Sequence record: PQ330092.1
DNA length: 64,000 nt
Strand: one strand, 5' to 3'
In this document: in pieces, positions 8,620-56,080 of the stretch
Position numbering within the stretch: position 1 is the first letter of the stretch
Layout: every line of letters starts with the position of its first letter
Notes under the pieces: generated by a model
The model's input: only the letters and a program-made list of their open reading frames with translations
The model's database searches: none
What the model was told of the DNA's origin: nothing
Made by a program: the position numbers and the translations under genes

Positions 8620-9047
8620 TGACAAGAGATGATTGTTTGTACATATGGGATATAATTGAAACTACACTTTCAAATCCAGAAAATTATAAAACAAAAAAAA
8701 GACAACGACACAAAATATGGATAGATTTGTTCGTTGAGGGCATACACGCAGTGACTATTTGGGATTCACCGAGGGCATCATCATCTACTCTGTTGGACAA
8801 TGAATGCATTGATTGCATTAATTCCACTTTTCATCTCTACGGTACTACAATTTTTGGTACATTTCTGGATATTGAAAGTAAAGATGATATTGATTCACTT
8901 GCGTTACAATACCAAGTACTATATAATACTAAATTAATTTACGATTTAGTACTAGCTTCTTATGTGTATAAATTAATGATGAAATATAATCATATTTCTG
9001 TTTCAGTTTATACTAAGGATATTCTTTCATTAAGAGACAAAACATGA
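8619..9047 (+). CDS. hypothetical protein (degenerate FQ box?)
   Basis: IDSLALQYQVLYN; TAATG overlap. Confidence 0.7.
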   Translation: MTRDDCLYIWDIIETTLSNPENYKTKKRQRHKIWIDLFVEGIHAVTIWDSPRASSSTLLDNECIDCINSTFHLYGTTIFGTFLDIESKDDIDSLALQYQVLYNTKLIYDLVLASYVYKLMMKYNHISVSVYTKDILSLRDKT

Positions 9048-9553
9048 GTTTATTAAATGCACGCGAATTGGTTGAGATGTATGAGATTTTGTCTTCATAT
9101 AAAAATTCTCCAAAAGATGTAATTCTAAACAAAAAGTTCCATGTCAGTGTTGAACATATAACAAATATAGATATGATTTCTTTGGTGGAAAGTAATAAGT
9201 CAGGTCTGGAGCGTGATATCATGCGTTTGATTTATATTCCTAAACCATCATATACTAATGATAGTACTATTAGCAATGAGACATTCATGTATAGTCCTGG
9301 TACGGATTCTACTATAGTATCGCTGTCCAATAAATCAATGGATACTTTCCAATTCATCTATACCAGTACTGATAACATTGAAGAAATTGAATTTCAAAAC
9401 AATACATTAAGTCCATGTAGTAGTGTTATAACCTTTATGTCATATCTATGGTCAACTAAAACAAGTGCTGTTGTATATAGTTCAAATTATACACAAGATA
9501 GTATTGTTGAATCATATAAAGTTCTAAAGGAATACTATGAAAATAACAAATGA
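9044..9553 (+). CDS. FQ-box family hypothetical protein
   Basis: IEEIEFQNNTLSP. Confidence 0.7.
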   Translation: MSLLNARELVEMYEILSSYKNSPKDVILNKKFHVSVEHITNIDMISLVESNKSGLERDIMRLIYIPKPSYTNDSTISNETFMYSPGTDSTIVSLSNKSMDTFQFIYTSTDNIEEIEFQNNTLSPCSSVITFMSYLWSTKTSAVVYSSNYTQDSIVESYKVLKEYYENNK

Positions 9554-10118
9554 TTTTATTAAAAGTGTAGTACACCCTATGCTTAGTATTATGAAAAAAA
9601 TACAGAATCTACCGGAAGATAACGATTACAAGTTTAATCGTTTTGATTCAGATGTGTTTTGTATTGAAATTGAAATTAATAACAATCGCAATTTACATTT
9701 AAAATTCAAAGAATCTTCGAGTCCGTACTACAACTTTGATATGAATTTTAAAATAGATACTGACATTGAAGAAAACATAATATCAAATCATACTAGCAAA
9801 AATGGTTTTATGCATAGAACTACTATGTACAATAATAAAAATAGTATTATATCTAAATGGAATCAACAATTCACTAAAATTTGTGAAATTGAATATAATG
9901 ATTTTGGTGAAGAACATTACTTTCAGTTAAGTACAATTCATGAACTTCCACCATATGATTATGTTAAAACATGGTTTGATATTCATAATATAATTGATGA
10001 TGCAATCAAACTTCCATTTGGTGTGTCAATATCATATACTGCTCCTAAAACATTTGTTTTTACTGAAGATATGATTATGAAAAAGATATGGGCAATTATC
10101 CCACTTATGATGGATTAA
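9537..10118 (+). CDS. FQ-box family hypothetical protein
   Basis: GEEHYFQLSTIHE. Confidence 0.75.
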   Translation: MKITNDFIKSVVHPMLSIMKKIQNLPEDNDYKFNRFDSDVFCIEIEINNNRNLHLKFKESSSPYYNFDMNFKIDTDIEENIISNHTSKNGFMHRTTMYNNKNSIISKWNQQFTKICEIEYNDFGEEHYFQLSTIHELPPYDYVKTWFDIHNIIDDAIKLPFGVSISYTAPKTFVFTEDMIMKKIWAIIPLMMD

Positions 10119-16885: not shown

Positions 16886-17740
16886 ATGAAACTTTATCTA
16901 ATCGTTGACTACAATAAGGATTATGCTGGTAACTTCACCGAAGATTCGGATGGATATTGCACATCGACTAATGTCAATGTACGTATCAGTAGTGCTCATG
17001 AACATGAATCTTGTAAAAATCTAAAAGATTTTATCACATACCGAGCATTTGAAAAGAACTTCTGCCGCAGTAGATATTCGAAGTTTGAGTACCCGTTAAT
17101 TGATGTTCCTGATGATTTAATGTTCCAGTTAATGCTAACTGGAGTTCAAGATTATGATTACATAGCATATAATCATATTACTAAGAAAATTTATATTGGT
17201 ACATCATCACATGACACTTCTATGTATGCATCATGCCCAGATGATCGATTGAATGATAGAAAATCATACTATAGTGGATCAGTTGGTTTAAATGATTCAT
17301 TAAATAAAAATTCATTCTTTGAGTATGTTTATGATTACCATCATGAGAAAAAAGAACGTGAAGATTACTGTATAGCAATTGATAGTACTAATGGGTATGA
17401 AGACGTGAAAGAAGCACTTATGCCGTACATTATTGAAAAGTACTACAAAGATTTTCAGTACTGTAGTAATTTTCTAATCAGAAATTCTATTATAATCGGT
17501 CGCCAATCCAATGCATACTCTAAGTATTACAATGATTCACCAGTAGCATCGGCAAATGAAATGTGTGATATTTTACAAATTCCACGTGAAGATATGGCAT
17601 TCATTTTTACGTCTTTTATTGAAGATGATGAATTGTACGTTAAAAATAAACACCGTTTAATGCCAAGTAAGATTGAAATTATTAGATGCGTAAGCGTTGA
17701 TATACTGACAAATTTTACTGAAAAAACAGAATATAACTGA
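16886..17740 (+). CDS. hypothetical protein with internal FQ box
   Basis: GGAG RBS; PDDLMFQLMLTG. Confidence 0.75.
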   Translation: MKLYLIVDYNKDYAGNFTEDSDGYCTSTNVNVRISSAHEHESCKNLKDFITYRAFEKNFCRSRYSKFEYPLIDVPDDLMFQLMLTGVQDYDYIAYNHITKKIYIGTSSHDTSMYASCPDDRLNDRKSYYSGSVGLNDSLNKNSFFEYVYDYHHEKKEREDYCIAIDSTNGYEDVKEALMPYIIEKYYKDFQYCSNFLIRNSIIIGRQSNAYSKYYNDSPVASANEMCDILQIPREDMAFIFTSFIEDDELYVKNKHRLMPSKIEIIRCVSVDILTNFTEKTEYN

Positions 17741-17757
17741 GACAAAGAATAAGTTAA

Positions 17758-17766
17758 TGATATAAT
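17758..17766 (+). promoter_or_regulatory. extended -10 promoter
   Basis: TGaTATAAT, same motif as other promoters in the window. Confidence 0.55.
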
Positions 17767-17769
17767 GTA

Positions 17770-17804
17770 AGGTGACAGCAGATGTTGTTGTCACCTTTTT
17801 TTTT
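17770..17804 (+). terminator. terminator-like hairpin
   Basis: AGGTGACAGCA-gatg-TTGTTGTCACCT plus long T tract. Confidence 0.7.
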
Positions 17805-18310
17805 AATCCTGAAAGGTTCCTATGAGGAAATGATTAAAAGCCTAATCCACTCGAAAATGTAGAGGGTAGATGAGTAGTCCTTTCAGTACGAACAGCAGAT
17901 GAAACCCGTTAGATGATGGCATAGTTTGAACCACTCACGGCAATGCGGCTGTATAAAGAACTCCAATAGGATAAAGAGAGTTCCTCGATAGACATATAAG
18001 GATCGCACCTTACCAATTATCTAAGGGAGATTTCATGAGAAATTTGCGGTCGGAATTATACAATATAGTTGCGTCCAAATTTTGTGAAATCAAATACAAG
18101 TACTGGTCATATGGTATTTGTATTATGTGTCGGGATGTTTAAGACCGACGACCGTTGCTACAAGAACCGCGATAGAGAGAAACAGAGCAACCCGCTTTCG
18201 TCTCGTAAGAGAATTCGTGATATGAACTATGTGAAGGCCACCAGCGTCAAACTTTTTTGTTCTTTCCCCTGCGGGGGGATGAAATATGCTCAAGCAAACC
18301 CCGTCAATAT
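17801..18310 (+). ncRNA. candidate large structured non-coding RNA
   Basis: About 500 nt with no credible ORF, higher GC than flanks, many helices incl. G-U pairs and a GUAA tetraloop (see findings). Confidence 0.55.
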
Positions 18311-18422
18311 TAATTAAAAGAAAATAGTACTTGTAGAATTAGACATGCGTAGCATGGTAATTCTACTGATGTTGATGGAATCAACGTCACGTATATTCAT
18401 TGATGTTTCCATAGGAATAATG

Positions 18423-18965
18423 ATGGCATTTATTAGAAAACAAAAAACTTTTACCTATAAGACTTTGGATTTTGTTGATTGTGAAAACCAATTACAAGAT
18501 GAAGATAACTTTACAGGATTTGTTGTTATTAAAGAAAAAGGATGCATTTCGTATATAAAGGAATTACAGAACGGCATTGAAGTTACTTCAGTCAAATTAC
18601 TTCCTACACAAAAACCAACAATATTAAAAGCACAGTATGGTAATTATTTCGAGGAAAGATATAGTAATAATTTAATAAGTGTTAAGGCTCATATTATAAA
18701 AGGAGAACTAGAAGGAGAATATAGAAAATACAACCCACAAGGAAAATGTGTTTGGGTTAAATACTTCAATTCAGGAAATGATGTAACATCTGAAATAATT
18801 GAGTTTTTAGGTTTAACATGTACCCCTGAAACTCTTCATGATTACAAATTTAATACTGAAGAAGAGTTTAATCTGATGATGCGTTATGGTTCACATTTTA
18901 AATTTTTATATGAATATAACATTGACAGTAGTACTTTTGATAAGATAGTACAGAACTGTCTCTAA
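18423..18965 (+). CDS. protein with MORN-like (YwqK-type) repeat segment
   Basis: GELEGEYRKYNPQGKCVWVKYFNSG; start set after AGGA RBS at 18413; C-terminal TEEEFNLMMRYG. Confidence 0.65.
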   Translation: MAFIRKQKTFTYKTLDFVDCENQLQDEDNFTGFVVIKEKGCISYIKELQNGIEVTSVKLLPTQKPTILKAQYGNYFEERYSNNLISVKAHIIKGELEGEYRKYNPQGKCVWVKYFNSGNDVTSEIIEFLGLTCTPETLHDYKFNTEEEFNLMMRYGSHFKFLYEYNIDSSTFDKIVQNCL

Positions 18966-53933: not shown

Positions 53934-55739
53934 ATGCAATTAGATAAATTATATACTGACGTAACGAATTTCCTCAATCAGAGCAATACTGATCTTACCA
54001 ACGAAAATGCGAACAAAGATGCGAAATGCGTCAATACACACAGGGATTTACTTGCAGGTATCCTATCTAAGCATTATTCACAAGATGTTATTCCAAATGA
54101 GCTAATGCAGTGGCATAATGATGGTTATGGTCATATTCATGATTTAGACTACTATATCAGCCCATTAACCAACTGTTGCTTAGTTAACTACCCAGATATG
54201 CTAAAAAATGGATTTACCATTGGTTGTGCCAAAATTGAAGAACCAAAGAGTTTTAGTGTAGCATGTACAGTACTGACACAAATTGTTCAGGCTGTTGCTA
54301 GTTCCCAGTATGGTGGACAATCGTTGGCTCATATTGACGTTGGTCTTGAACCTTACGTTCAAAAGTCATGGGATAAGCTGTTAGAAAAACAAAAGAAATA
54401 TAATCTAAGTGATGAATTCATTGAAGAAGAACTACGAAAAGAAGTATACGATGGCTGTCAAACATTACTTTACCAAACTAATTCAATGATTAGTACTAAT
54501 GGTCAAGCTGCATTTATTTCTCTTAGTTTAGGTCTTAATACTTCTAAATTTGGTAAATTAATTACTGAACAGTACTTAAAAGTTCATGAGAATGGTTTAG
54601 GTAAAGATAAGATTACTCCAGTGTTTCCTAAAGTTATTTTCTTTCTACAAGATGGTATAAACATGAATGCAAATGATAGCAATTATGACCTCAAACAGTT
54701 AGCTATGCGTTGTGCATCAAAAAGAATCTATCCAGATTTTGTTTCAGTACCATTAAATCACAAAGTGACTGGAAGTAGTAGTACTGCTGTAACACCGATG
54801 GGCTGTCGTTCATTCTTAGGAAAATGGGAAGATTCAAATGGAAATGAACAATACAACGGTCGTTTCAATTTAGGCGTAGTTTCTATCAATTTACCTCTAA
54901 TTGCTCTTGAGAGTGCTTCTGATGGAGAGTTTTTTGATAAGATAGACGAGCACATGAATATTGCATATCGTGCTCAGATGAACCGTGTGGAGCGTTTAAA
55001 AGGCACTAAAGCGAAGCAGAATCCAATTTTGTTCATGGAAGGTGCATTAGCACGTTTAGGTGCAGAAGAAACCATTGACAAGCTATTTTACAATGGTTAT
55101 GCTAGTATTAGTATTGGTTATGTTGGTCTTGTTGAATGTTCAGAAATCCTCACTGGTTCTATCAGTAAGGAGTTTTGTATGTCAGTACTGAATTATATGA
55201 AAGTAAAATGTGATGAGTTCAAAAAAGAAAGTAATATTGCTTTTAGTCTATATGGAACTCCAGCAGAGTCGCTTTGTTATAAATTTGCACGTTGCATTGA
55301 AGCAAAATATCCTTCAGTACTAAAACGTGATTACATCACAAATTCCTTCCATCAACCAGTATGGGTAGAAAGTTCTCCATTTGATAAATGGAGTTATGAA
55401 GAAGGGTTTGCTTACCTAAGTAACGGTGGAAACATCAGTTATGTTGAATCTCCAAACTTAGCAAACAACATTCAAGCACTTGAAACATTAGTTAACTATG
55501 CGTACACTAAGATACCATATTTTGGTATTAACCAACCAGTTGACCATTGTTATGAATGTGGCTTCCAGGGTGAGTTCAGTGTAGATAAACATGGTTTCCA
55601 CTGTCCTGTATGTGATAATCGTAATGAGAAGACAATCTCAGTGATTCGTCGTGTTTCTGGGTACTTGGGTAATCCTTCTTCGCGTGGCTTCAATAAAGGC
55701 AAGCAACAAGAGTGTTGTGAGCGTATTCAGCACAAATAA
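53934..55739 (+). CDS. nrdD: anaerobic ribonucleoside-triphosphate reductase (class III)
   Basis: NENANKD start, HIHDLDY, NCCL, MGCRSFL, GRFNLGVVSINL, CYEC..CPVC, RRVSGYL glycyl-radical loop. Confidence 0.95.
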   Translation: MQLDKLYTDVTNFLNQSNTDLTNENANKDAKCVNTHRDLLAGILSKHYSQDVIPNELMQWHNDGYGHIHDLDYYISPLTNCCLVNYPDMLKNGFTIGCAKIEEPKSFSVACTVLTQIVQAVASSQYGGQSLAHIDVGLEPYVQKSWDKLLEKQKKYNLSDEFIEEELRKEVYDGCQTLLYQTNSMISTNGQAAFISLSLGLNTSKFGKLITEQYLKVHENGLGKDKITPVFPKVIFFLQDGINMNANDSNYDLKQLAMRCASKRIYPDFVSVPLNHKVTGSSSTAVTPMGCRSFLGKWEDSNGNEQYNGRFNLGVVSINLPLIALESASDGEFFDKIDEHMNIAYRAQMNRVERLKGTKAKQNPILFMEGALARLGAEETIDKLFYNGYASISIGYVGLVECSEILTGSISKEFCMSVLNYMKVKCDEFKKESNIAFSLYGTPAESLCYKFARCIEAKYPSVLKRDYITNSFHQPVWVESSPFDKWSYEEGFAYLSNGGNISYVESPNLANNIQALETLVNYAYTKIPYFGINQPVDHCYECGFQGEFSVDKHGFHCPVCDNRNEKTISVIRRVSGYLGNPSSRGFNKGKQQECCERIQHK

Positions 55740-55747
55740 GGTAAATT

Positions 55748-56080
55748 ATGGATTTAAAGCCAATTGTGGTTAACAAATACAAAGAACCGTATGATGTGTA
55801 TATTGGACGTGGGTCTAAATGGGGAAACCCATTTACCCATATTAAAGATAAACAAACCAAAGCCGAGTTCATTGTTAGTACAAGAGAAGAATCAATTGAA
55901 AAATTCAGAGAATACATTATTGAACGTATTTCTTGTGGAGAAGTTAAGATTGATGAATTACTTGAACTCGCAGGGAAACGCCTTGGTTGTTTCTGTAAAC
56001 CAAAATCATGTCACGGCGATGTTCTTGTCGAAATAGTGAGTGCAATATTAGATGAATTACCAGACGATAATCAAGGATGA
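55748..56080 (+). CDS. DUF4326-like protein
   Basis: YDVYIGRGSKWGNPF, LGCFCKPKSCHGDVL. Confidence 0.75.
   Translation: MDLKPIVVNKYKEPYDVYIGRGSKWGNPFTHIKDKQTKAEFIVSTREESIEKFREYIIERISCGEVKIDELLELAGKRLGCFCKPKSCHGDVLVEIVSAILDELPDDNQG

Follow-up and report, generated by a model that had tools for sequence, protein, structure and literature searches.

We found that the intergenic stretch at 17741-18422 of a 64,000-nucleotide window of sequence record PQ330092.1 very likely contains a gene for a large, pseudoknotted non-coding RNA, which belongs to no RNA family that we could identify. This RNA is kept in 3-5 copies by Rak2-like jumbo phages, and is also found in integrase-bearing defence islands in the chromosomes of their enterobacterial hosts. 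Hence, it probably matters in the conflict between phages and their hosts or satellites, although its function is unknown. The gene, on the + strand, is inferred to span 17767-18389, with a core of about 0.5 kb and a unit of about 0.62 kb when its two 3' hairpins are included. A prior sequence-only reading had proposed a large ornate ncRNA, possibly of a new class, at 17801-18310, and our analysis supports that interpretation. However, that reading did not recognize that the RNA is multi-copy, that it contains three pseudoknots, that the unit extends to about 18389, or that bacterial chromosomal islands also carry it.

The region 17741-18422 is 100% identical to Escherichia phage JP4 (370.7 kb) and 97% identical to 121Q and PBECO4, of the genus Asteriusvirus of Rak2-like jumbo phages. 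The upstream ORF (phrog_15199) stops at 17740, whereas the next protein gene (phrog_16210, of unknown function; 18423-18965, + strand), which is not part of the RNA, begins at 18423 in the JP4 annotation, with its PHROG family aligning from there, and is followed by a Dam methylase. The latter was the only product recognized when the neighboring genes of the window were searched against Pfam and PHROG. The GC content is 0.38-0.455 across 17800-18300, in contrast to 0.27-0.33 in the flanks. The same gap lies at the same syntenic place in Munch, XbC2, BF, CBB and RaK2, with no consistent CDS annotated in it. BLAST searches recovered the element, several times per genome, in 71 phage records, all Rak2-like, from phages of Escherichia, Salmonella, Klebsiella, Erwinia, Yersinia, Serratia, Pectobacterium, Cronobacter and Xanthomonas. 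Homologues were also identified at 56 IMG/VR loci.

The folding energy of the single sequence is not significantly better than that of shuffled controls (z -1.24 on the + strand and -0.53 on the - strand), and the case for the structure consequently rests on covariation. In a MAFFT alignment of 29 copies, the RNAalifold consensus has compensatory changes in 46 of 71 pairs. A covariance model of the 3' core (R1, 144 positions), which scores 105 bits in the window, aligned 56 distinct sequences with 99.4% of cells paired, against 75.2% in shuffles (0 of 500 reach the observed value) and 37-46% when partners are slid by 1-3 columns; 21 of 27 pairs in this model show changes on both sides. We also counted pairings over the whole structure (90 pairs defined in window coordinates) on an unfitted MAFFT alignment of 57 sequences. 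Here 93.1% of cells are canonical, as against 75.2% when shuffled (maximum 76.1%) and 37-44% when slid, and 67 pairs show double changes. In this alignment 396 G-U cells were observed against 127 A-C cells, indicating that the fold is on the + strand.

The fold thus supported comprises about 16 helices locked by three pseudoknots. A hairpin followed by U7 (17769-17804) is both the terminator of the upstream gene and the first structure of the RNA transcript. The 5' domain (17809-17889) contains the pseudoknot PK1 (17809-16 with 17879-86), the Pa hairpin (17817-29), the Pb hairpin (17847-66, loop GAAAAUGUA), a near-invariant AGAUGAG (17868-74, with A/U at its third base) and Pc (17874-76/17887-89), with double changes in 7 of 8 pairs of PK1, 5 of 5 of Pb and 2 of 3 of Pc. 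The central domain (17892-18029) contains P2 (17892-96/17948-52), P3 (17906-09/17937-40 plus 17912-13/17935-36), P3b (17917-19/17931-33), P4 (17958-63/17978-83), a conserved GAUAGACAUA (17987-96), P5 (17997-18001/18008-12) and an invariant UAAGGGAG (18022-29). This is followed by P6 (18029-18091), a long variable hairpin carrying a UUUUGG..AC-AAUAUAG..-GUCCAAAA module with loop AAUAUAGAUCC; depending on the paralogue this module sits in P6, in P11 or in both (columns 340-395 and 521-560 of our alignment A3), and thus behaves like a transplantable peripheral element. The 3' core (18093-18225) consists of P7 (18093-18124), whose loop (18107-12) pairs with 18220-25 to form PK3, P8 (18128-50), PK2 (18154-58 with 18187-91), P9 (18168-72/18215-19), P10 (18175-79/18195-99) and P11 (18201-12). 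All 7 modelled pairs of PK3 covary, and one pair of PK2 is CG in 14 and UA in 15 sequences. The 3' tail (18242-18307) bears motif 1, CAGCGUCAA (18242-50), a U6 run (18253-58), the P12 hairpin (18264-78) with an invariant G-run, and motif 2, CCCCGUCAA (18299-307). Finally, the hairpins D1 (18333-66) and D2 (18367-89) form a module conserved after the core in both phage and island copies.

Nearly all helices listed in the sequence-only reading are retained in this structure. Covariation confirmed ACAGC/GCTGT (P2), CCGT/ACGG (P3), GAACTC/GAGTTC (P4), GTCGG/CCGAC (P8), GTTGC/GCAAC (PK2), TCTC/GAGA (P11) and the 18029-18091 hairpin (P6), whereas CCCC/GGGG (P12) pairs but shows no covariation. CAAATAC/GTATTTG is a register variant of P7 (family register 18093-99/18118-24). 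In contrast, the proposed pairing of TTTTAATC with GATTAAAA is not conserved, and the 5' strand 17809-16 instead pairs with 17879-86 in PK1. That reading also missed PK1, Pb, P5, P9, P10, PK3, the promoter, and D1 and D2.

Each copy is equipped with its own promoter. In the window, a -35-like GAGACA (17739-44) and an extended -10 TGATATAAT (17758-66) lie between the stop codon of the upstream gene and its terminator hairpin (17737-17804), such that the terminator is the first thing transcribed; this layout is kept in all orthologues of this copy (copy A). A comparable arrangement of a GGAAC/GGGACA/GAGACA box, a spacer of about 16 nt and TGnTATAAT lies at a similar distance upstream of every phage and every island copy. 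TGATATAAT boxes recur every 2-4 kb, almost all on the + strand of the window (2996, 14290, 16051, 17758, 19736, 21693, 23843 and others; 17 found against 10 expected), and are probably the standard host-RNAP promoter of the phage. In CBB, BF, Yen9-04 and XbC2 the copy near 174 kb lies on the + strand between minus-strand genes and ends at a strong bidirectional terminator about 150 nt after the core. Contigs from four RNA libraries (wastewater metatranscriptomes and others) cover 17797-18353 in 4 of 4 runs and also include fragments of the paralogues, whereas 17612-17762 and 18518-18819 have no coverage in any run, and 18367-18517 is covered in only one. Contigs cannot establish a discrete transcript or its ends, strand or level, and some DNA may be present in such libraries. 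Four of five paralogue types also have no terminator before the next gene, so that the RNA may be made as the 5' part of an mRNA.

The copy number is 4 in JP4 (76.6, 201.7 [the copy studied here], 256.0 and 334.8 kb) and in 121Q, 5 each in Munch, XbC2, BF, CBB (32, 94, 174, 258 and 336 kb) and fHe-Yen9-04, and 3, plus one weak hit, in RaK2. All copies within a genome are co-oriented. The paralogues are about 70% identical to each other and cluster mainly by genomic position across genera, and therefore predate the genera. Some lineage-specific homogenization has nevertheless occurred in the E. coli phages, in RaK2 and in the CBB 32 kb copy, which, despite its copy-A position, clusters with the 335k-type paralogues, suggestive of gene conversion. 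In five-copy genomes the copies are spaced 44-86 kb apart, and the probability of so large a minimum gap is 0.001-0.02 per genome, though these genomes are syntenic and hence not independent. The genes adjacent to the five paralogues are unrelated to each other.

The family also extends to bacterial chromosomes, where it occurs as a single copy. Of 5,426 complete E. coli genomes, two carry one intact, full-length copy with its own promoter (R1 score 125.7 bits). In LR-29-1, the one examined, this copy (8930-9571 of the fetched locus, L266) lies in an island of about 10 kb beside ffs, which contains an IS3-split integrase, a 303-aa protein, the RNA, a 257-aa protein and an mSLOG/DUF4326-DUF488-DuOB module. 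Interestingly, the phage window itself encodes, at 55736-56053, a DUF4326-like domain 41% identical to the mSLOG-DUF4326 protein of this module. The three true hits of a pattern scan of GTDB, an isolate (Enterobacteriaceae RIT714) and two MAGs, belong to a related type. In the most complete of these loci (L154) the order is integrase, RNA (+), cI-like S24 repressor (-), cro-like HTH_35 (+) and a 286-aa protein; a second (L249) lacks the cI/cro pair, and the third (L178) shares only the repressor. The 286-aa family is widespread in Enterobacter, Klebsiella, Atlantibacter and Raoultella, and all 6 loci fetched through three of its clusters hold the RNA, convergent with the repressor gene, with cargo including Kiwa, a PLD-family protein and SMC-like/DUF6602 proteins. 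No rep or primase gene is recognizable in these islands, PHROG and PADLOC searches of their core genes returned only the cI-like and cro-like repressors and weak hits, and tblastn found no homologues of the 257/286-aa protein in Rak2-like phages. Direct repeats of TATCGATCG upstream of the 257/286-aa gene (9975-10025 in L266; 7215-7305 in L249) might be iterons, but more likely form an operator region, because the region is shared with L249, where no cI/cro pair intervenes. Island copies keep every helix, the two 3' motifs, D1 and D2 (R1 scores 92-126 bits). Seven of eight island RNAs form their own deep clade, whereas the E. coli copy nests inside the phage 174k clade, and is thus either a second, recent acquisition or a replacement by recombination.

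Searches with the covariance models of Rfam 15 (4227 families, including ROOL, GOLLD, OLE, raiA, HEARO, 6S, tmRNA and RNase P) gave no hits at the gathering threshold in the 64-kb window, and at E of 10 or less returned only noise in the region and in 20 homologous loci, with no recurrent family. ARAGORN found no tRNA or tmRNA in the window, resemblances to RNase P noticed by eye failed against the alignment, and our literature searches found no description of this RNA. Large RNAs with elaborate tertiary folds are rare, and almost every one studied has revealed new biochemistry; the present one has unusually strong covariation support and is present in every member of a therapeutically used group of jumbo phages (PBECO4, 121Q, RaK2, K64-1, GAP32, CBB). 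That it is a real and new structured-RNA gene is very likely.

As to its mode of action, we tentatively favor a free-standing folded RNA or RNP acting in trans, though we place this at somewhat less than even likelihood. The two 3' motifs change in parallel: CGUCAG/CGUCAG occurs in 50 sequences, CGUCAA/CGUCAA in 22, UGUCA/UGUCA in 4 and CUUCA/CUUCA in 3, with no column showing the complementary change. This points to two equivalent CGUCAR sites read by one factor, which, together with the invariant single-stranded segments, would form the site of an RNP scaffold or decoy, although no partner protein was identified. Under this view, the role of the RNA would be central enough to the phage for the islands to have copied it, at least twice if the E. 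coli copy is indeed a separate acquisition, either to exploit the phage or to interfere with it. On the other hand, the even spacing, co-orientation and retention of each paralogue at its syntenic position fit a position-dependent role in cis better than a diffusible RNA. These features are accounted for by the main rival, a possible though less likely transcription-primed replication origin, wherein the RNA forms a persistent RNA-DNA hybrid near its G-run and 3' motifs and primes leading-strand synthesis, as ColE1 RNA II and T4 oriF/oriG do. Phages would then carry several origins, and islands without a rep gene would carry one so as to be replicated during infection. Consistent with this, the promoter is obligatory, co-orientation holds even for the copy inside a minus-strand block, the length is close to that of RNA II, the G6 run is invariant while its C partner drifts, and integrase-plus-defence islands are known to be amplified and packaged by a jumbo phage (PMC12595487). 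However, three pseudoknots and many invariant unpaired bases over about 600 nt are more than known primer RNAs need, and no DUE, iterons or DnaA boxes are conserved. A more speculative possibility is that the locus is the molecular handle linking Rak2-like jumbo phages to a widespread family of integrase-plus-defence islands, as an RNA-primed origin or as an RNA or RNP recognized by the phage machinery, with the islands carrying a copy so that they are replicated or mobilized by the phage, or so that they sabotage it. This would be the first RNA-based helper-satellite or defence-decoy link.

The remaining alternatives appear much less likely. A DNA-level or single-strand signal for packaging, hijack or priming, with incidental transcription, would fit the co-oriented element being shared by phages and candidate satellite islands, as satellites usually copy the cis sites of a helper, but not the promoter at a fixed distance, the abundant G-U cells, the pseudoknots or the RNA-library contigs; moreover, five pac-like sites per genome would be odd. 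A cis-acting leader, such as a riboswitch, attenuator, processive antiterminator of the HK022 put type or mRNA-stabilizing 5' UTR, is suggested by the position just downstream of a promoter, by terminator-like hairpins plus a U-run inside many copies, and by four of five paralogue types running into co-directional genes without a terminator. Yet, the 174k type and the island copies have no co-directional gene downstream, the downstream genes are unrelated between paralogues, and with promoters every 2-4 kb no long operon needs antitermination. A self-processing ribozyme or degenerate self-splicing intron is likewise improbable, despite the size and pseudoknotted complexity, GUC-containing twin motifs and an AGAUGAG-stem-GAA segment superficially resembling a hammerhead. 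In the latter segment A6 is U in about a third of copies, the G12-A14 positions vary and the GAA is not conserved. The element is not inside a gene, the upstream gene ending with a stop codon and a terminator; its helix order differs from the P3-P9 of group I introns; no group II domain V hairpin or 5' GUGYG appears in the alignment; and no skipping joint in the contigs fits a splice. Least likely of all is coding capacity, either as the 82-aa ORF (18069-18317) or as the four minus-strand CDSs annotated in JP4 (17842-17934, 18010-18099, 18123-18293 and 18314-18412). The longest ORFs differ in strand, frame, position and length among 36 copies, 1-nt indels occur in the conserved 3' tail, and the 82-aa ORF exists only in the JP4/121Q orthologue and has no PHROG family although every neighboring gene has one. 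The 30-56-aa minus-strand hypothetical proteins, also annotated in several related records, are not conserved and are probably annotation artefacts.

Among known systems, the ROOL and GOLLD RNAs are likewise 0.5-0.8 kb in length, rich in helices and pseudoknots, carried by phages or prophages, endowed with their own transcription units and of unknown function. However, the present RNA matches neither Rfam model, is not next to tRNA genes, is multi-copy per genome and belongs to Enterobacterales jumbo phages. The ColE1 RNA II and T4 oriF-oriG origin transcripts resemble it as promoter-driven RNAs of about 0.55 kb with a G-rich segment, whose fold could control hybrid formation, and T4 is known to have several origins per genome; but there is no homology, the fold here is far more conserved, and no RNase H site or antisense RNA I was found. 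The distantly related jumbo phage PA5oct has four abundant ORF-free transcripts of 0.24-0.62 kb defined by RNA-seq, ncRNA001-004, all on the + strand (PMC7318152). These are not homologous, as R1 finds nothing in the PA5oct genome and an nhmmer profile finds nothing in the ncRNA002 region. The phi29 pRNA is also a phage-encoded structured RNA that uses loop-strand pairings and is needed for a virion process, but it is 174 nt long, single-copy and without homology, and a packaging role is not indicated here. Finally, a 2025 study showed that integrase-plus-defence islands lacking transfer genes can be packaged specifically by a jumbo phage, JPTI55, by an unknown recognition mechanism (PMC12595487). 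That system is in Pseudomonas, with no shared RNA or recognition signal reported, but the host islands carrying the present RNA, like I55, have an integrase, defence cargo and no transfer genes, and the RNA may show how jumbo-phage satellites recognize their helpers.
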